This document shows, piece after piece, positions 14,750 to 61,061 of a stretch of DNA of 64,000 bases; position 1 is the stretch's first letter; every line of letters begins with the position of its first letter. The DNA is taken from contig RHPI01000003.1 of NCBI GenBank assembly GCA_009103225.1, positions 62,001 through 126,000 of the forward strand, read 5' to 3'. The position numbers and the translations under genes are program-made. Origin of the DNA: Chlorokybus atmophyticus. Taxonomy: Eukaryota; Plantae; Mesostigma and Chlorokybus algae. Below the pieces are notes generated by a model. The model was not told the origin of the DNA and did no database searches. It saw only the letters and a list, made by a program, of their open reading frames with translations.

Positions 14750-17235
14750 ATGCAGCAGGTTGAGGGGGAAGGCGGCGTATCCGCATTAGGGTGGTACCAA
14801 AGTCAGCTGTCAGCTGCGGTTGCTAGCAGCGGTGGCAGCACCAGCAGCAGCAACTCAGCAGCTCACCATCAGCACCTCCGGCAGGGAGCTCCTCCTAGCG
14901 GAATCAACAGCATGATGATGATGCAGGACTGGTGGCACTCCCCCCTTGATCAAACACAGGTAATACCACGGTGCTTTGTCGATAGGTCAACTCTACAGCA
15001 TTAGCAAAGAGATGTACAAAGCAGTGGCAGTGTTACACATGCTTCGGTTAATAGAGGCGATGCTGCCTGGAGCTTGTCAAGCGCGTGTTAGAGCTCGGTC
15101 AATGATATAGTAGTTCTGTCTGCTTGAACACTAGTCAGCTTGCAAGCTGCCGAGCAGTCGCAATGTTCATCCTTCTGTAAGCTCTCTTCACAGAGAGTTG
15201 CTTCAGTGGGAGTGGTATTTTCAGCTCGTTGTGCTTGTTGGCTTTGCCAGTCGTCTTCTACTCACAACCTCGAACAAGCTGTTGCTGAGGGCTGTTGCTA
15301 ATGTCACACGCGCGTGGCAGGTTGCGGCTCGCCTGCCACTGCAGATGCCTCCCCAGTTGGACACACAACAGCAGCGCGCGCTTCAGCAGCAACAGCAGCA
15401 GCAGCAAACTCCTCCTCCCGTCACGGGTCCCCCGAGCCAATTGCAAGCCAATCAGAACGCCTTCAAGTTCCTGTCTCAGGTGCAGAGAGAAGTGTGTCCT
15501 TGTTCTTCACCCGCTGCGGCCTGGCCCGTGGCGGTAATGCTGGCCTGCCTGATGTTGTGTGTACTTATCGTCCTTATTGCATTGGCGCAGGACGCCTCCT
15601 CGGAGATGTCGGGGCTGGCGGGGATGGGCGGGTATAACGGCGGCATGAGTATGGGCGGTGCCGGTGGCGTAGGTGTGGGTGTGAGCAGCGGGCCGGCAAC
15701 GCATCCGCTCGCCCAGCTCGGACCCCTTGCGCATCACTCCCTCGCCCAGCACCACCAGTTTCAGCACCCTGCCCACAACCCCTTACAGGTGCGTGTGTGC
15801 GTGTGTTTGTGCGCACCAATGTACAAAAGGCACACATTGTGTCGGGTGCTCAAAGAGCGTGTGTGCTTCTGTTGCAGTGGCGAAGCCCGATGGCGAGGCC
15901 CATGGTGATGGACCCGTACGGGCCCTCGGGCCCGGTTGGCATGGGCGGCGGCGCGGGCGGCGTTGTTGGTGGCGGCATTGGAGGCGGCCCTATGAGCCTT
16001 GACGACCAGTATAATGCTGCCACGAGAGCGATGTCGATGTCCTCGTTGCTGGCTGCCAGCGGCATCGGGGGCCACTCTTCCCTGCCCAACACCCGCTGCG
16101 TGTCTCCCCTCGGCGACTGTATGCTCTCCCTCAACTCGCACGTGCAGGTGAGAGCAGAGCTCCTGTAGTTATTTGCGTACGTGTACGTGTGTACCACTCG
16201 CGCTCACACGTACACAACTTGCAGGCGCACGCCAACCCGTTCCAGCAGCTGCCAGCGAGGCCGATGAGCGCAAGCGGGAACGGCCCTCAAGTTGTTGGAA
16301 ACGGAACCGCGGGGATGGACCACGACGCGGCGGCGGCACACGAACTGCTCCTCCGCCAGCCGCAGAACCCGCTCGCCCTCAACATGATGCTCGCCAACAA
16401 GCTCGGGGCCATGGCTGGGGCCGGAGGCGGCCACGTGGGTGCGGGTGGGTCTGGCGGCATAGGCAACATGGGGCGTCGGATGGCTATCGTGGTGAAGGGT
16501 CAATGGACGATTGAAGAAGACGAGGCGTTGCTTCAGTTGGTTGAGAGGTACGGCGCGAAGAGGTGGTCTTTGATAGCCGCGCACATGCCCGGGCGCATAG
16601 GCAAGCAGTGCCGTGAGAGGTGGCACAACCACCTGCAGCCGGACATCAAGAAGGACGTGTGGACGCCCGAGGAGGAGGCCCGTCTGGTGGCCGCGCACAG
16701 CATGTGGGGCAACAAGTGGGCCAACATCGCCAAGATGCTCCCGGGACGCACCGACAACGCCATCAAGAACCACTGGCACGCCACCATGAGGCGCAAGGAC
16801 CGCCACGGTCAGGTGCGCTCATCCATCCTACGCGACTACATCACTAAGCACCAGCAGCAGGCTCACCACGCCAACAGTAGTGGTGGCGGGTCCTCCGGCA
16901 CGTCCTCACGCCCCACGTCCTCCTCACCGTTGGGCGCCGGCTACAACCACTATCACAATGCCCAGCATCACCACCATCACCACCACTCCCACTCTGCACG
17001 CAACTCCCCTTCTCCTCAGGTACTATCACGGTCAACAGTTGTGTTGTTGTGCACCGCCAACTCGAAACCCATATTGCTTCTGGCTGCTTACACGTGCATC
17101 GCTGTTGCTGCGCAGACACCTCCCACGCCGCATCTCAACAGCGGGTCTGATATGGACCCGCTGGATTCGGCGTCGGACATTGCCGAGGGCGAGTCGAGCC
17201 ACCGCCGCATGCCGCTTCAGAGCATGACGGTGTGA
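14750..17235 (+). CDS. R2R3-MYB transcription factor (MYB98/MYB64-like clade), multi-exon; 3' end uncertain
   Basis: Exons about 14750-14959, 15345-15479, 15591-15788, 15878-16147, 16225-17019 and 17116 onward, with phase-consistent GT/AG. R2R3: [103 protein letters not shown]-rich flanks. Confidence 0.92.
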
Positions 17236-27522: not shown

Positions 27523-30500
27523 ATGCTGCGTGCGGCGACGACGGCGACGTCGTTGTCGTCGTCGTCGTCGTTGTGGCCGTCGTCGTCCTCGTTGCCATTG
27601 CTTGGTGTGCGAGCACGTGTCAGGATGGCGCTTGCCGAGAATGCTTCTTCCGCCGCCGCTCCCCCTGCGGCCGCGCCCCCTCCGCCCACCTTCTCCAAGC
27701 GCATTGTGGCGACGGACCCGCCATGCATCATACAGGTCTGGCCTGGCCTGGCCTGGCTGGCTCGATCACGCTGTGCATGAGATTGTTTCGTGGCAGGCCA
27801 GGGGGTTCTGCAAGGCGTAATTGTACCAATGCAGCAGTCCCTGTTAATTTATCAGCTGTCATACCCCCAGGCAATGCATGCTTTCAATGCTTATGATGAG
27901 CTACACGACGCCATGACACTTACTAGGGTCTTTGCGATCTGCTCAGCTACCAGTTTGCGTTCATTGTTCTCAACAGCCAGCTGTGGCTGCGATGAACACA
28001 AGCGCGCCAACAGTTGTACTGCATTGCACGAGCACGACGCAACACAATGCTCCAGCATGATGACTACAGACTTATGTAGTATGCTGTGTTCAGCATTGTC
28101 AGCTGTGTTTGACATTCTAGCCTTTGCATTCACGGACGCCCATCTTGTGAATACCACTGTCATGTAGAAGCATAACAATATGTGTGTCTGTGTGTATGTG
28201 TGCGTGCAGATGCAGAGGCTCATGCGCGGTACAGAAGGAGTGATGTCGCTGGCGCAGGGCATAGTGCATTGGACGCCACCGCAGAAGGCTCTGGACGCGG
28301 CGGCTGCGGCGATATCGGACCCGCTCACCAGCAAGTACGGCGCTGATGATGGCATGCTTGACCTTCGCGCCGCGCTTGTTGAAAAGGTGTTGCTCAATTG
28401 ACATACACACAGTGGTATCCAAGCTGTTGTACTTGTGTCACATTTGTGACTGCACGGGTGCGTTGTCAAACAGGTTCTGACTTGTGTGTTCCTCTTGGCC
28501 TTTGCAGCTTAAGAATGAGAATGGCATGAAGAATCCGGCTGTCATGGTGACAGCTGGAGCTAATCAGGTACCAGGTGTGTTGGTATTGACTTGTGGTTTT
28601 GTGCTGTCCATCCTGCTGGCACTGACAGTGTACTCTAATAAAAAGGTGTTTAGTACTCTGATCAGTTGACAGATGACCTTTGCAGCACATGCACAAGTGC
28701 ACACGCATGTGCATGCATGTGTGCATGCGAGTGCGCACGCACGCACGCACACACGTATACACACAATGTCACACCCTGTGCTGCGTTTTGTCTTGTCCAG
28801 CTGTGCCCGATGACACAAACAAACTGCGAATCCAACATGTTGTGATGGCCCAATTGGCAGTTGATTACAGTATCCCACGCACCCATGCACACACAGGCGC
28901 GCACACGCACATGCCAACACACCTGCACACCCAAACACGAGCACATACTGACAATGTGCATAATCTAACACTGCGTGATGTGGTCCGGTCAGTGCAGGCG
29001 TTCACCAACGTGGTGGTGGCGCTGTGCGATGCGTCTGACCCTGTCGTCCTCTTCGCTCCGTACTACTTCAATCATCTGATGGCGCTGCAGATGACGGGCA
29101 GCGCGGGCTCGATTGTCATCGGGCCCTCGGACCTGCAGACCAACATCGCCGACATGCGCTGGCTCCGCGAGCAGTTCGCCTCGGACAGGAAACCGAAGAT
29201 GGTCGTGTTGGTCAACCCGGGTAACCCCACAGGCGCTCTGCTCCCGCGCCACGTGCTCCAGGTTTGTGTGCTTGCATTAACTGCCAACGCCACGCCTTTG
29301 CAAACGTATCTGCGCAAAAGCACATGAGTGTGTTGCAGTTCTGTTGTAATAAAGTTCTGCTGCGCTGCTTGTGCTTGCACGCGTGATATTGTGCGCAGGG
29401 TGAGTATTGGGCTATTGCCAACCTGTGGTGATAACACGGGCGAGCATGTTACCGTACTATTTAATACGTGGCTGTGCTATGTGCGTGTGTGTTCAACAGC
29501 GGGTTGTTGTGCTTGTTCATTATGTTGATTATCTTTGCGGCTTGTGTAACCACATAGCCAGAAACTCAACAACAGCGGAAAGCGTAGTAGAGGCTCCTGT
29601 CCTCGATTGCTCCTTGTCTGCAACGTGCTTGGCTTATTCTGTTGCTGTTATGCAGGAGGCGTCGGAGCTGTGCAAAGCCAATGGCGCGTGGCTTGTGATG
29701 GACAACACGTACGAGTACTTTTTGTACAATGATGCGGTGCACAGCGTGATTGAGGCGGACCACGTAATCAACATGTTCAGCATGTCGAAGTCGCATGGGA
29801 TGATGGGTTGGCGTGTTGGTTATATTACCTACTCTCCAAATGTACCGGGCCTTCTTGACCAGCTGCTGAAAGCACAGGTTGGATGCTTGTGTTGCAATGG
29901 CAGAAAATCAAGCTGTTGCAGGCACAACATCTGACTGTACTCGATACACGCAACAGGACACGATACCTGTCTGCGCACCCATCATTTCGCAAAGAGCAGC
30001 GCTCGGCGCACTGCAGGTACTTTTCAAACAGGTGTAATCAACCGTTGGTCAGTCAACATGGTGTTGGCTGTACAGTTGCATCTGTCCGTCTGCGTGCATG
30101 CGCGCGTGTTTGTGTGTGCACCGGCGTGGGTTGTGCTTACGTTCTGTTGGGCACCCTACCAGGAAGGTCCCGAGTGGGTGAAGAACCAGGTGGCCGGACT
30201 GTCAAGCAATCGCGCAGCTGTGTTGAAGGTGATCCTCATTGCATGGGGACAAACGTTACGTGGGGAACCACCACTCATGTGGCTAAATGGTGCCATGCCG
30301 TGCTGCGCGTATGCAGGCTCTGGAGCCACTGGGTGCCGGCGCAGTCTCCCCTGCAGATGGCGCCATTTACTTGTGGGCAAAGCTGCCACCACACGCTGAT
30401 GATGATCAGGTAATTGATATTGTTGTTGATACTTGTACTTGATGCGTGTTGGGTTGATGTTGTAACGGTATTGCAACACGTAAAGATGTCAGGTGAGATG

Positions 30501-35308: not shown

Positions 35309-37034
35309 CAGGCAAGCCCTGTGCCTGAGCTCAAGCTACAAGCTAAGAGCTGCAGCAGCAGTGCGTCTGGCGCACAGCATACGCTAATAGGTCAGTTCTG
35401 TCAGTAGGTTGCTAGAGCTTAAGCAGCAGGTCACGCCTTGAGGAGGGCGTCAGGGTGCACGAGGAGCGCGCCCACTACCGCCTCGCCGACACGGCAGCGC
35501 CCTGCCCATATGCTGCAGCAGGCACAGCAGCAACAACATGCTTACATCGGAACGCGGTAGTTGCTGCACCGACTTTGTGAAAGGCGAGTTCATTCACGGC
35601 GTGCATCTTCGGTAGGTTCTAGTGATCCCCGTTGTGATTGCCGACGTTTTGCATGAGTTCGCGTCACGTGAGGTGGACATCCCAAGTTGGGAGTCCCAAC
35701 TTGGGTGAGATCGCCCAGGCAGCGCGCCTCACGAATAGTGATTCATGGCCCCTGAAGCCATGAATCACTACCGCAATGTACTACATACATCACAACCCGC
35801 ACTCTATTCAAATCATAATTATTCACTTCAACCTTTTGCTACTATAATAATCAAGTCAATAAAATGCATTGATGTTTGTGTTGCTAAGACTCTCTGAAGA
35901 GCTAATAAAAAATAAAATCTGAGACAATTCGGAATTACTTTTTTATCGTAATGTTTGTAGCAGTACGGTATTCATGAGTCATGAACACAAGTTGCATTAC
36001 CCAACCCCTTGTTATACAAGTCCCAATGGCCCCTGTATATACAATATGAGAGATGATGCAAGACAAAAAACGTGTGTATGCATATTTTGCCACTTTTACT
36101 ATTGAGCTTATAATATGCAAACTCATGTGTCTGTATGTTTGTATGGAAGCAACCGCGAGGGGGTTGGGGGGGTAGAATGGAAAAGAGTGTACATAAATCC
36201 AGAACATCAATGCATGCATTGTGACGTTTTGGATACGTGTCTGTCTCGTTAAAAGCAATGGATTTGTGTGGGCGGGGTAATTGAACTGCATTAGAACATA
36301 CTTGGTTGATTGTATCACATTTGCCAGGATTCTTGGTAAGTGTAATACAATGTGCACTGACGCGTTGTATTTTACAAGTAACAAAAAGTCAAACCACATA
36401 ACAAATTGCACTTGATTGATATTGATAACTATACTGCAGCCCATACCGGTGCTACCTTGTTACCGGCGGCGCGGTGGCAAGGGGGCATAGGGTATAGCTC
36501 AGGGGCCAACAAGCAACCACAGCAACCAATAGCAACGCAACAACAATAAGCAATGAACACCACAACAAGCAGCAAGCAACACAGAGCTAGCTAGACTAAG
36601 GGGGCTGCTACCTATGTGCGTGCAACGTGTAGGCAGTGGAGCAGGCAGTGGCAGTTAGGACAGATCTGCCAAACTACCTGTACAAGGTAGGGGCATAGGG
36701 AGCGGTCAAGGGCTTGACTGGTATTGCTGTCAGCGGCGACGATCAACTCTTACCACCCCTGCTTTCACCTTGAGGTGCCATTATGTTGGCTGACCCTTCT
36801 CCTTGCCCAACCTGTGTAACCCCTGCAATCCATTCCAACTTACACAATAATTGCATCTGTTCATACACTTAGGTACGGGTTTGTTCTCCAGTCTTGTGGC
36901 AGTCCCATGTAGCCTCAAGCCCCACGTGTCAAGTATGTGAACACTGCTCATGCCACTGGTATGAGTTCTATTTACTTGTTGCAGCAATACATGACGTGAA
37001 GTCAGTAGCGAGTTGCAGCGTCATGCATGAACAC

Positions 37035-39461
37035 TTACAAGACCTTCACACGCATTGCAAGCTGTGTCCTCCAGATCCATACTACCAAAAAAAATGCTGT
37101 CAGACACGCCGTCCACGCTGCCCAACCGGCATGAATGTAGCCGTTGATCGCGAGAGCTTGAGCCATTGCGGCAACTGCATTGCAGGTCAACGCACACGCG
37201 ATGGCCACTGTTGGCGAGTGCAGTCGTCTACCGTGAGCTGCACTTGAAGCAGAGAGCAACACTGCGGAACCGCCCACCTGCAATTACAAACGAAACCAGC
37301 TGTTGGGTTTGTCATAGACAACATGCACCCTATGATGGACCTTCCATCAGGCTTTGCAGTGACTTACCAAAGCATAAGCCATACAGGACCCCGCCATGGC
37401 ATCCCTGGCATGGAAGTAATACATTGCCTCGCATGCGTCTCTCTCACAACCCTCAACACCTGCCTCCCCTCTCTCACGCATGTCACGAGCTCTTGTTTGC
37501 AAGTAGGCAACACGCTCTGCCGCCTCTCTCCTCGTGCAATCTTGCAAGCTTGCTGAAGCACGTGCGGCTGCCCGCGCTATGTTGGGCATTGGCACTTCCA
37601 TTGAATGCAACTGCGCATGTTGAGGGTTGAAGCCACATGTGACACTACCAAAAGAGAGCGCACGCACCTTAACAATGTCACGTGCGGATGCATCAGGTGA
37701 CACAGATATGGCCGCTGCATTGTTCAGCTGCCAGGCGCGCTCTTGCCAGTTCCAAGTGCAAGTATCAGCGCTGACAACCTATATGAAGCGAAGCTGATGG
37801 AAATGCTTGACATCAGTGCAAGGTGACCGTATGCTTCTTTTCAATCAGCTTACCCTCAAGGGTTTGCCAGCGGGATCGCACTCGAGCATGCACAGACCAC
37901 GCATGCATCCGCCCTCAATCATGCGCGCATACCAAGCGCGCTGCAATGCGTGCGGGCCTCCCTTCACCTGCGCGAGGGCGTTATGTACCACTCCCCACGC
38001 CACGTGTACACATTGCGATTAGACGCGTTGCAAGTCGGCGGGCACAGCAACACGTGCCCGCGCATGGTACTCCGAGTACATGAAGTCCGGTCGCGGCTGC
38101 ATGGAATGCAGCTCTGTCGTCAAGGCGCTCTCAACCAGCTTCCTAGCTCTGCAGACAGAGCAATTGCAACCCTGATGTGTAACCGTGTTTGGTTGTCAAC
38201 TCTCACTTACCGCATGCTTGCATCTGGCACAAGCCACTCTGAGCAGCCCCATGCCATGCCAGCTGCTAGTACGCCCACAACACAGACAGGCACCATGAGG
38301 CGGGCGGGAGACACGCCCGCAGCAGCGAGCGCCCCCAACTCTCCATCCGCCTGCGTGTGAGCACGTCCTGTTAGCAACAGAGACTGACAGCCAACAAGCT
38401 GATTCCTGTTCTGTAGCTCGTCGTGCCTGCATGCGCGACAGTACGAACAGCACTGCTGCCATTGCTGAGTATGGCAGCGCTAGAGTGAAGAAACGCGGCG
38501 TTTGGAGGAGGGCTGCGCCCAAAGCCACACGAAGTGGAAGGCCTGCACATGCACGCACATTTGTGTGTTGTCAACAGCTTTCCTATTTACAAAAGTTACA
38601 TGCAAGAACATGCTAGTACAGGTTGCTTCCTTGACAACCATGCAGGAGTAAAGCCGCATGCACATGGCTACAGCATGCACATAGAAAAAGACATGCACTT
38701 CTGTGAACCCTGACAACTCTGAGTTACATGCAAAGAAAAAACAGGGAAGTGTGGTGGGCACAAGGTGCACGCATGGCTTAGCTCTCGTGTGAACGAGTCT
38801 GCGCACGCGCACTATGCAGCTTAACAAGAGCGTGTGGAACAAAGGCACGGCCATGAAAGCCACCTGAATGGCACACATGGCACACATGGGTTGATAACCG
38901 GGCAGCGCTGGGCTTATCATTGCCTGCAGCAACGCTGTTGTCACAATGCTGAGCGGACATTGCTAAGGCGGCAGTGCAATTGTCTTGCATTCAGCAAAAC
39001 ATTTCAGCTCAAGCACATGCGCGTGAGTTGCAAGCATTGGGCGCGTTTGCTGTGTAAGTCAAGGCAGTACCAGACACAACCACTTCGCGGGCAAGCTGAA
39101 CGAGGGCGCCAAGGGAGACGCCCAGTCCTGCAATGGCGCCGACGGCCAGGAGGAAGGGGCCTGCTGCTTCTTTCAGGAAGCAGCGGTCCAGGAGCGGGAT
39201 TGCCAGCTTTGTCGTCAGACTTCTCAACTTCGCTGTAGCGCTAAGCCGCAAGCTTGCATTGAGCCGGAAGCAGCGGACTAGTAGGCGGCGAGGAGGCAGC
39301 GGCGGCGAGCGGCAACGCAGACACTCTGGTCGAACCGGAAGCTGTGCCCGGTAGCATACCAACTGGCAACAACGCTCTGACAGAGCTCTTTTTAGCCACG
39401 TGGCGGCATTGCCCGGTGCGACCGCCGCCGTCATGCCTCTCCGCTCAGTCTCCCAGGCCAT
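37035..39461 (-). CDS. lptF: LptF/LptG (YjgP/YjgQ) family permease, cyanobacterial type, spliced, with transit-peptide-like leader
   Basis: Exons give IPLLDRCFLKEAAGPFLLAVGAIAGLGVSLGALVQLAREVVVS|GLPLRVALGAALLQTPRFFTLALPYSAMAAVLFVLSRMQ|ADGELGALAAAGVSPARLMVP..WGCSEWLVPDAS|..LQRAWYARMIEGGCMRGL..|VVSADTCTWNWQERAWQLNNA..|..MYYFHARDAMAGSCMAYAL|VG..GYIHAGWAAWTACL. These follow the cyanobacterial YjgP/Q order. ATG at 39461 or 39434. Confidence 0.85.
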
Positions 39462-39639: not shown

Positions 39640-39836
39640 ATACCTTTCTCGGCCTTTTGGCTAAGATCAAGTGTAGTATCTGTTCTTATCAGCTTAATAT
39701 CTGATACGTGGCCCATCGGGTCACAATGATATTAAACTAATTTGTTTGGGTGGAGGTCTCATACGGGTGGGCTTGCTCACCCGAGGCCTCCGGCGTCGCC
39801 TCAGCATTGCACTGCCGCAGAGGATGGCGCAGCCCA
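39640..39836 (+). ncRNA. U2: U2 spliceosomal snRNA
   Basis: atacctttctcggccttttggctaagatcaagtgtagtatctgttcttatcagcttaatatctgatacg..., branch-point recognition GTAGTA, Sm-like aatttgtttg, 3' attgcac stem-loop; ~197 nt; TATA-like tataat about 30 nt upstream. Confidence 0.97.
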
Positions 39837-41225
39837 CCCCTTCCGGGGACCACCACAACCACCCACCCACACGCAACGCACACACTATCAACACAATGTC
39901 AGTACACACTCATCAACAACGCACCTCCACAAACACACATGCCACACCTTCACCCGCTCGCATACTTGGCGTAGGCACCCACATCAACACCCACCAACAA
40001 CGCACCACCACAAACACACATGCCCATCCCACACCTTCACCCACTCGCATAAGCGGCGCATGCACCTACATTATCGTGCTAATGCCATGCATGTAAGTTC
40101 ACCAAAGATTACACGCGCTTGATATAGCTTTTGCACCAGATCCTCGTGCCAACTACACGCATACCTCCCTTTATGGTATCCAATGTGTGGCGCTTGCGCT
40201 TCGTGCATACCAGTTGTAGCAATCGTTGCCCCCACCTGCCGCTGCTACATTCTGTTGAAGTATTGTGCACGTGCATGTTTGGTGGTGAATGTTGGCATGT
40301 GCATTGCGTTTCACAATATTTGTAAATTGTTAACGACTACCTCATTAGCTTCACTACTGCACTGACCCCCGCTAGACAAGCATGCATGCATGTTGAGTCA
40401 CTTGTGCATGTGCCTTGGTCAGCGGCCAGCATCTTCTTAGCATGAGCGTCAGCAAACAGCCGAGGTGCACTTCCCCTCCCCCCGCCTCCATCCCCTCGGC
40501 CGTCATCCGTCTCCCTTGCCACTTCCGTCTGTGTATTGTGTTGTTGGTTACTGTATCTAATCTTATTCTATACACTATGCGTCTCCTCCTGCTTTGCTCT
40601 ACTCTCCTTTCCTTGTATGTGCATACATAGCATGTTATTTAGATTTGGTACAAATTACGGAATACGTGTATATGCATATACTTGCGAGGTAATGATATAG
40701 CTGATTCAAGTAACTGGACCAGTGTACAAACAACAGAGTGTTATCATGGATTCCTATACAATGCGTCATGCAACTGCGTATGCATAGACCATGCATTATG
40801 TGATAGAGAGTACTGTAGCTCCGTTGCATGCAGTAATGCACCTTTCTAATTTATTTGAAGGGGCCGCAAACTACCCAACTGACATCACATGGGGAATCCC
40901 GGTAGGGATGCCAAGTGTGTGCATAGGTAATGCAGCGGCTGTCCATGCCTGCCCGGTATAATTACGCTGGCTACCTGCAACTCAAATGAGTGGCCTCAAA
41001 TGGTTGGGCATACAAATTGTGCTTGCATGATTTACTGTAGGTGCAGAACCTGCTGTAGCAGTCGAGCTGTTCTACCATTGAGTCGACTAAAACACATACT
41101 GTACATTACTGCAGTTAGCATGGTCCCTGCAGAGGGCCAATTCGTACATACACCTTCTCGCGTGCAGCATGAAGGGTGGAGTAAAAGGGAACGTTGATAG
41201 AGTTTACCGGTGCGTTCAGGATGTG

Positions 41226-59600: not shown

Positions 59601-60870
59601 CGCCAGCGCATTTGGCGTATCTTACAAGTCTGTATTGGCTACAACCATGCAAGTCCTCAATTTTTTATCATACACATGTTGCGCCTCCATGTTTATGAAA
59701 GCAATGATGGGGGTGGCACCCCTATGTGTGAACAGTAATGACGGATGCAAATGGCATCTGGCATGAGCATGTGCTCAGTGGCGGAGCAGCAATTAATCAT
59801 GCAATATAAGCAATATAAACATGGATATGGACGTAAATAAGGTGGACAACGCGAGCAACATAGGCCATTAATAACAGATGATCACTTGTTAGCAGTGCTT
59901 TGTGTCATGTTGTTGTCGTCGTGATTGTCAATCCGTTAACGCCGCCATGCAATTATTGCTTAAACTTGCGCTAGACTTCTGGCCAGCTTTCTATTTCATA
60001 TATTGATATATTTGCTAGCTTATTGTTGTTCGGATGTGCAAATGCATTTGCATGATAGCGCATATGTGATACAGCTTGGTAAATACATAGACACACATAG
60101 CTGCCTACCCAGAATACATTATGATATTGATATCATACAAAATCCATTTGCATTGGATGCACTAAGATCTAGTACTCTTGGTAGAATGCAATTTGCTTAG
60201 CCCACTGGTGCATGACATGCTTTCCTTTGATTCTGCTGGGACCAAACCGGCAGTCACATCAAGCTTGGCAAGCCACATTTGCGCGCCACACCTGCAGCAC
60301 GTGGCTGTGTGTCAGCTAACCGCGGCAAGCAGCGACCAGCGTGTAGGATGAACGTCCTTGTTATATGTATGCGATAGACTTTACACGTTAGGGCACACTC
60401 GCAGTAGCAGTAGCAGCACTCAATGGCAATGCACTACTGAGTAGTGCACTGCCATTGACATTCGCTACCGAGGCAGTGCGAGAGACTGTCTGCGTGCTTG
60501 CAGTTGAGTAACGTGCGCAGATGATTGCAGAACTTGGATTACGCAGTGGGTTAAGCTTCTAGGCGACGGCAAGAGGAGGGAGGGAGGAGGAGGAGGAGGA
60601 GGAGGAGGAGGGGGGGCTGCTGTGAGGGTGGCGTTACAGACTAGCAGAAAGCATGCCTTGGTGGTGGTGACGGGTGCTGTAACACCACCCCAGCGCGCAG
60701 ATTGCCATCACCAACACTCGCTTCAGCACTGATCAAGAATAGCGCAGGCTTGTTGCTAACGCAACAACACCGTCACGGTTGCCGACAGCGACGTCGCCGC
60801 CCACGTAGCAAATGAGATTGCTACGCGCAAGACGCACGAAAAAAGTGCAAAAGTCATCCCGGATGAACCA

Positions 60871-60958
60871 TCCGACGAGCCGGATTCGAACCAGCGACCT
60901 AAGGATGTCTGCTTGTCACAACTACAGTCCTCCGCTCTACCAACTGAGCTATCGTCGG
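60871..60958 (-). tRNA. trnY-GUA: tRNA-Tyr(GUA) with a 15-nt intron (60907-60921)
   Basis: Reverse complement: CCGACGATAGCTCAGTTGGTAGAGCGGAGGACTGTAG[ttgtgacaagcagac]ATCCTTAGGTCGCTGGTTCGAATCCGGCTCGTCGGA. Perfect 7-bp acceptor stem with C1:G72, A and B boxes, T-run terminator near 60839-60844. Confidence 0.97.
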
Positions 60959-61061
60959 ACTCGATGCAAGCAAGTGAAGACTACAAAAATATAACTGTAT
61001 ATTTGCATAACAGCGGGTGCGCACAACAACATGAAGAAGTGTCAAGCTTGGCGTTGAAACA

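Follow-up and report, generated by a model that had tools for sequence, protein, structure and literature searches.

An intron-split nuclear gene of the alga Chlorokybus atmophyticus encodes an LptF/LptG-family permease with apparent cyanobacterial-type affinity

Comparison with described Lpt systems

The described proteins closest to the gene studied here are LptG and LptF, the permease subunits of the proteobacterial LptB2FGC complex (PDB: 6mjp, 6mit, 5x5y). We analysed 64,000 nucleotides (nt) of Chlorokybus atmophyticus DNA (GenBank assembly GCA_009103225.1, contig RHPI01000003.1, positions 62,001 to 126,000), called the window in the following, and found on its minus strand a gene that encodes an intact permease subunit of the LptF/LptG family (type VI ATP-binding cassette (ABC) transporters; Pfam: PF03739). 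The gene product and the bacterial subunits are alike in their Pfam family, in three plus three transmembrane (TM) segments, in the beta-jellyroll and in a coupling helix with a conserved Glu, and the structural model of a Klebsormidium orthologue matches chains of these complexes and nothing else confidently. They differ in sequence, with about 17-19% identity, and in that the window gene is eukaryotic, nuclear and split by introns and encodes a presequence of 84-88 amino acids (aa). Furthermore, no lptB gene is adjacent to it, a single permease gene is seen in the 64-kilobase (kb) window, and several of the residues contacting the phosphates of lipopolysaccharide (LPS) are replaced.

The nearest relatives that we found are permeases of lptA-lptB-lptF/G operons of apparent cyanobacterial type in metagenomic loci (for example L131, L133, L041 and L083), with 27-31% identity and scores of up to 160 bits. 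These proteins share the ESGLPL...P.F...SEL.AL motifs and an invariant Arg at the end of TM1 with the eukaryotic proteins, to which they are the sister group with 98/98 support. In contrast to the eukaryotic genes, they have neither introns nor an N-terminal extension, and their operons also encode LptB and an LptA-like protein.

In plastids, the TGD1-TGD2-TGD3 importer of plants, which is MlaFEDB-like, and the LptD-like proteins TGD4 and LPTD1 are also envelope-lipid machinery derived from the endosymbiont. They belong to other families (MlaE/MlaD/MlaF and the LptD barrel), and their likeness to the permease would be one of origin. The Lpt-related plant proteins named in a 2025 review are only the LptD-like TGD4 and LPTD1 (PMC12096540), and our searches of the full-text literature gave no paper on LptF/G of plants or algae. 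An earlier reading of the window made from the letters alone (the sequence-only reading) had tied the novelty of the gene to the lack of already described orthologues. This holds for the literature that we found, but orthologues of Klebsormidium and Ceratodon are already deposited. Since these are public under a Pfam-derived name, we regard the gene as an unstudied eukaryotic member of a known family and not as a new kind of system.

We favour the reading that the gene encodes a nuclear LptG-like subunit which came from the cyanobacterial ancestor of the plastid by endosymbiotic gene transfer and which would take part in lipid export at the plastid envelope. The probability of this reading as a whole is, in our estimate, about 0.72.

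Family membership and fold

The gene runs on the minus strand from the ATG at 39461 to the stop codon TAA at 37037-37035, which is exactly the span of 37035-39461 proposed by the sequence-only reading. In the final model eight exons with 1482 nt join in an intact frame, with a predicted protein of 493 aa. Stop-free pieces in shifting frames match PF03739 co-linearly along 39461-37035. Exon 3 alone reaches 37 bits (profile positions 77-121), which is above the gathering score of 27.9, while exon 2 has 23 bits (positions 37-78) and exon 8 has 14 bits (positions 289-352). With the NCBIfam models, exon 2 scored 19.4 bits for LptF, and exon 3 scored 25.7 bits for LptG and 25.3 bits for LptF. The spliced protein was matched by a hidden Markov model (HMM) built from bacterial sequences only, with 187 bits (E-value 2.4e-59) in a single domain covering HMM positions 3-361 of 365 and residues 87-483, and a shuffled copy of the protein had no match to this HMM. 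The HMM search proposed for the family assignment thus places the protein in PF03739, both by exon 3 and by the spliced product.

The Kyte-Doolittle profile has six hydrophobic segments, arranged three plus three around a hydrophilic middle of about 215 aa. In the numbering of a preceding seven-exon model they are located at residues 103-121, 148-166 and 187-205 and at 422-440, 458-476 and 482-500. Together with the full-length HMM match, they reproduce the order of TM1-3, periplasmic beta region and TM4-6 that had been read from the letters.

The orthologue of Klebsormidium nitens (P0002) matches PF03739 with 159.5 bits over profile positions 1-350 of 353. Standing in for the window protein, it was modelled with AlphaFold2 (AF2) from a 37-row alignment, with a predicted local distance difference test (pLDDT) score of 83.9 and a predicted template modelling (pTM) score of 0.75. 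In this confident model, three long helices are followed by six strands and another three helices. Foldseek's top 30 PDB matches to it come without exception from LptB2FG(C) complexes and are chains of LptG or LptF; an LptG chain ranks highest (E-value 1.7e-16). By these structural matches and by the NCBIfam scores of the orthologues, the permease is closer to LptG than to LptF: P0002 has 105.7 bits for LptG and 82.9 bits for LptF, and the Ceratodon protein (P0003) has 67.9 and 63.1 bits. Both are below the equivalog cutoffs of 240 bits for LptG (NCBIfam: TIGR04408) and 230 bits for LptF (NCBIfam: TIGR04407), as is the cyanobacterial-type L131 protein with 161.9 and 137.9 bits, respectively. 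Because of these scores the gene was filed as LptF/LptG family, LptG-like, and not as LptG proper.

Bacterial relatives

Searching a plasmid collection with tblastn retrieved only Proteobacteria and one Bacteroides, with the alpha-proteobacterial Azospirillum LptF at about 50 bits. A DNA-pattern scan of genome contigs gave no match with patterns made from P0002, and with patterns made from P0002 and Azospirillum it gave only Azospirillum-like LptF. Cyanobacteria were reached by neither search. For metagenomes we used a degenerate DNA pattern for the motif G-L-P-L x11 P x7 P x18 E-L-x-A-L. This returned 120 loci, 112 of which have intron-less LptF/G homologues, mostly of 350-450 aa. Scored against the eukaryotic proteins, the best of the matches listed have about 130-160 bits, in comparison to the roughly 50 bits of Azospirillum. 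Most of the longer loci have the order lptA-like gene, lptB (329 bits against NCBIfam: TIGR04406) and then the permease. Loci with an lptA-like gene, lptB and a single LptF/G-type permease are L131, L133, L041, L054, L058, L121, L061, L142 and others, and the HMM detected no second permease gene in them.

A tree of 57 rows, including 37 metagenomic sequences and four eukaryotes, was calculated with IQ-TREE under the model LG+C20+F+G4. The four eukaryotic proteins have long branches and build a clade with 100/100 support, which is joined to the 37 metagenomic sequences with 98/98 support, and the proteobacterial LptG and LptF sequences are positioned outside. Placing the eukaryotes with the alpha-proteobacterial LptF was rejected by the approximately unbiased (AU) test with p 0.0009, and placing them with the proteobacterial LptG with p 0.0004.

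Two observations bear on which bacteria the metagenomic sequences come from. In subgroup A (18 loci) the HIP1 octamer GCGATCGC, a cyanobacterial marker, occurs 5.9 times per 10 kb where 0.15 are expected, an enrichment of about 40-fold. One locus of this subgroup, L083, encodes BioU (605 bits with a cutoff of 600), a biotin enzyme of cyanobacterial type. Since the sister group in the tree includes subgroup A with HIP1 and BioU, the cyanobacterial-type affinity that the sequence-only reading had proposed for the permease, to be checked by phylogeny, is supported for this motif-selected sample. Besides these markers, 13 metagenomic loci had no taxon-diagnostic RNAs in an Rfam search, and NCBIfam scans of the neighbours in L131, L116, L133 and L041 found housekeeping genes only. 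The GC content of subgroup B is 0.63-0.66 or 0.25-0.28.

Eukaryotic orthologues and age of the gene

Searched exhaustively with exons 6 and 7 (137 aa), a representative protein set yielded one true relative, the K. nitens protein KFL_001080110 (P0002), which is deposited in UniRef under the name 'Permease YjgP/YjgQ family protein'. The other match of this search, P0001 with 3676 aa, is spurious. Word-index searches added the protein KC19_8G050300 (P0003, 592 aa) of the moss Ceratodon purpureus, the protein P0010 (600 aa) and short Klebsormidium-like fragments. Together with the window protein, there are at least four eukaryotic members among the matches listed, with pairwise identities of 34-40%. 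P0010 is encoded on a 2561-nt Logan contig of the run SRR8128905. As this contig is intron-less, it is probably a spliced transcript, and the orthologue is probably expressed; the transcript support for the gene comes from this orthologue alone.

The exon structures of the Klebsormidium and Ceratodon orthologues were determined exactly from their loci, and a single protein alignment served to compare the positions of all introns. Five intron positions are common to the window gene, Klebsormidium and Ceratodon, each with identical phase, and a sixth, the GC-AG intron 2, is common to the window gene and Ceratodon. Exon lengths of 116, 140 and 111 nt are identical in these two genes. The neighbours of the orthologues are eukaryotic genes: at one locus a chromo/BAH DNA methylase and a GATA factor, at the other a glyoxalase. 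The shared introns validate the splice junctions, including the GC donor, and they imply that the common ancestor of the alga, Klebsormidium and the moss already had the gene in its nucleus, with introns. It is an old nuclear gene, retained from a time before these three lineages diverged.

The same introns decide about a bacterial contamination of the assembly or a recent horizontal transfer, which might be suspected for a gene of an otherwise bacterial family with no eukaryotic members described in the literature that we found. Seven introns of spliceosomal type, five to six of which are at shared positions and phases, refute this explanation. Moreover, the identity to the best prokaryotic homologues is about 28%, and genes for U2 small nuclear RNA (snRNA) and a Myb protein are located on the same contig. 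The window is eukaryotic nuclear DNA and is not human, and we give contamination or recent transfer next to no probability.

N-terminal extension and predicted localisation

Before the LLDR start of the permease domain, the window protein has an N-terminal extension of 84-88 aa when counted from the first ATG and of about 75-78 aa from the second in-frame ATG in exon 1 (39434-39432). It is rich in Arg, Ala, Leu, Pro and Cys, with 14 Arg, no Asp, four Glu, five Ser and a net charge of +13. The sequence-only reading had described an acid-poor extension of about 75 aa rich in Arg, Ser and Ala. The paucity of acidic residues and the richness in Arg and Ala are confirmed, and the length applies from the second ATG, but the extension is longer from the first ATG and, with five Ser, is not Ser-rich. 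N-terminal extensions are also present in the Ceratodon protein, in P0010 and in the Klebsormidium-like fragment P0007, and the prokaryotic relatives are without. Composition and distribution support the assignment of the extension as a putative organelle-type leader.

In the annotated K. nitens protein (P0002; L021:6001-6238), the domain is preceded by no more than about 38 aa. The fragment P0007, which has a Ser/Arg-rich start, reaches about 140 aa upstream, so the deposited K. nitens N-terminus may be truncated.

An Arg-rich, amphipathic and acid-poor leader also fits a mitochondrial presequence, and the permease might be imported into mitochondria and handle lipid A-like precursors there. 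The Lpx enzymes of plants, which make lipid A precursors, have been reported as mitochondrial, and the bacterial matches in the plasmid collection included the alpha-proteobacterial LptF of Azospirillum. The tree speaks against a mitochondrial role, with its 98/98 grouping with cyanobacterial-type sequences and the AU rejection (p 0.0009) of the alpha-proteobacterial LptF placement. In addition, genes of cyanobacterial descent mostly serve plastids, although retargeting is known. We consider import into mitochondria, the strongest rival reading, improbable and retain the plastid envelope as the favoured location of the permease.

Conservation of functional residues

The coupling-helix Glu of E. 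coli (LptF E84, LptG E88) shows strict conservation, and both the binding of LptB and the release of LPS depend on it (PMC5082905). It aligns with Glu173 of the window protein, in a column that is invariant in all 37 rows of the alignment. The conservation of this residue argues that the permease may still dock an ATPase. Two further features, the GLPL motif and the Arg of TM1, are invariant between the eukaryotic proteins and their prokaryotic relatives.

The residues K34, K40, K62, R133, R136 and Y320 of LptG bind phosphates and acyl chains of lipid A (PMC6744409). In an alignment that is below 20% identity and hence only indicative, the K40 position is an invariant Arg, and K62 and R133 are Arg in three of the four eukaryotes. 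The Tyr at the Y320 position is kept in the metagenomic prokaryotic relatives, whereas it is lost in the eukaryotes.

These substitutions are among the observations that would be expected of a decaying or function-shifted relic, working outside of any ABC transporter or not expressed at all. The long eukaryotic branches, the orthologue scores below the equivalog cutoffs and the one GC donor are in line with such a relic, and the distribution looks patchy, though four eukaryotic members among the matches listed do not establish patchiness. A relic is hard to reconcile with a 1482-nt frame that is intact over eight exons, with a full-length HMM match and with an invariant coupling Glu, GLPL motif and TM1 Arg, and the orthologue P0010 is probably transcribed and spliced. 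We therefore regard a relic as very improbable.

Possible role in the plastid envelope

Under the favoured reading of a plastid permease of cyanobacterial descent, the extension would act as a transit peptide and take the permease to the plastid inner envelope. There it would dimerise, either as a homodimer or with an unseen paralogue, and would dock an LptB-like ATPase via its coupling helix. Driven by ATP, an amphipathic lipid would be lifted from the outer leaflet onto the beta-jellyroll and handed toward the outer envelope, where plants have the LptD-like TGD4 and LPTD1. Possible cargoes are a lipid A-like molecule and other glycolipids.

Several observations weigh against this reading. 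Arg-rich amphipathic leaders of algae cannot separate plastid from mitochondrion. A tblastn search of the 64-kb window detected neither LptB nor LptA/C nor a second LptF/G gene, and in bacteria the permease pair of LptB2FG is a heterodimer. In the same low-identity alignment (<20%), the LptG residues K34, R136 and Y320 correspond to Ala, Val and Asn/Thr in the eukaryotes. The NCBIfam scores of the K. nitens orthologue are under both equivalog cutoffs. The cyanobacterial label of the sister group consists of HIP1 and one BioU gene and not of named genomes, the metagenomic sample was picked by a motif which the eukaryotes share, and the tree covers few phyla. Finally, the gene model has one GC splice donor and one ambiguous donor.

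A more far-reaching proposal is that in part of the green lineage (this alga, Klebsormidium and at least one moss) an Lpt-type extractor still operates at the inner envelope of plastids. It would consist of a single LptG-like permease, possibly as a homodimer, with an LptB-like ATPase, and its cargo, a lipid A-like or other glycolipid, would be passed on toward TGD4/LPTD1. This proposal is tentative, and we consider it rather unlikely to hold in full. If true, plastids would have a second bacterial lipid-export route beside the TGD/Mla system.

Plastids keep the LptD-like barrels TGD4 and LPTD1, while an inner-membrane Lpt engine is undescribed, and the permease is a testable candidate for it. 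It is also a possible marker of how much of the outer-membrane biogenesis machinery of the endosymbiont has survived. As Ceratodon is a transformable moss, the question is open to a genetic test.

Exon-intron structure

All features of the gene are on the minus strand. The first model, with seven exons and 512 aa, was built by joining pieces at splice-like boundaries, and the comparison with the orthologues then added a 57-nt intron. From the first to the seventh, the introns are 528, 76, 62, 57, 75, 57 and 90 nt long; six of them are GT-AG and intron 2 is GC-AG. The sequence-only reading, with about seven exons bounded by GT and AG, was thus short of the actual count of eight and did not account for the GC donor.

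Exon 1 (39071..39461, 391 nt) encodes the extension (up to about residue 85, nt 39461 to about 39207), then the LLDR domain start and TM1, and ends in phase 1 at the donor G/gtactg (the slash marks the splice site). Its junction with exon 2 reads EVVVS-G-LPLRV, in agreement with EVVSAGLPLRV in the orthologues. Intron 1 (38543..39070, 528 nt), a GT-AG intron of phase 1, is the sole long intron, and its position and phase are common to Klebsormidium and Ceratodon. Within this intron, a 60-nt in-frame segment bounded by AG and GT (AMISPALPGYQPMCAMCAIQ, 38925-38866) was rejected as an exon and treated as intronic, because a counterpart is absent from all orthologues and the direct joining of exons 1 and 2 reproduces the orthologues without gaps.

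Exon 2 (38427..38542, 116 nt as in Ceratodon) has the GLPLRVALGAALLQTPRF motif and TM2. It is followed by the non-canonical GC-AG intron 2 (38351..38426, 76 nt, phase 0; CAG/gcacga ... cacgcag/), which is matched in position and phase by a Ceratodon intron. The P-to-E spacing fits the permease family only if this junction is used. Exon 3 (38211..38350, 140 nt) encodes the coupling helix with Glu173 (GAG at 38341-38339) and TM3.

The beta-jellyroll region begins in exon 4 (38025..38148, 124 nt as modelled), the acceptor and phase 2 of which are common to the Klebsormidium and Ceratodon orthologues. Its 3' end is ambiguous, as three in-frame GT sites (38024, 38045 and 38051) in a length-variable loop may serve as the donor of intron 4; with the alternative donors, exon 4 ends at 38046 or 38052. 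Exon 5 (37854..37967, 114 nt) continues the beta region (LQRAWYARMIEGG...), and the intron position at its 3' end is common to all three species. Exon 6 (37668..37778), again in the beta region and with a W-x-W motif, has 111 nt in Klebsormidium and Ceratodon as well. Intron 6 (37611..37667, AAG/gtgcgt ... gcgcag/) is the in-frame 57-nt intron exposed via the orthologues, and splicing it out raised the HMM score from 172.8 to 187 bits. Exon 7 (37368..37610, 243 nt) completes the beta region and adds a charged linker and TM4, and exon 8 (37035..37277, 243 nt including the stop codon) encodes TM5 and TM6.

Genomic surroundings

A complete U2 snRNA gene (Rfam: RF00004, 167.8 bits, model positions 1-192) is located at 39640-39837 on the plus strand. 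It is divergent from the permease gene, 178 bp upstream of the permease ATG, and in view of this arrangement the two genes may share a short bidirectional promoter region. Further away, an open reading frame (ORF) at 16189-17235 on the plus strand has two Myb repeats (Pfam: PF00249, 131 bits) and is an R2R3-Myb-like gene or exon. Another ORF piece on the plus strand, at 28680-29327, matches the aminotransferase class I/II family (Pfam: PF00155) with 31 bits and is probably an exon from a gene with introns. At 60870-60959 on the minus strand, Rfam found a tRNA gene of 88-90 nt (60.7 bits). Its anticodon was left unnamed by ARAGORN, in line with a nuclear tRNA that contains an intron. On both sides of the permease gene there are A/C-rich low-complexity tracts of the CAACAA/CAGCAA type (36500-36582 and 39850-40000), and at 36531-36582 Tandem Repeats Finder (TRF) detected a 22-nt unit repeated 2.4 times.

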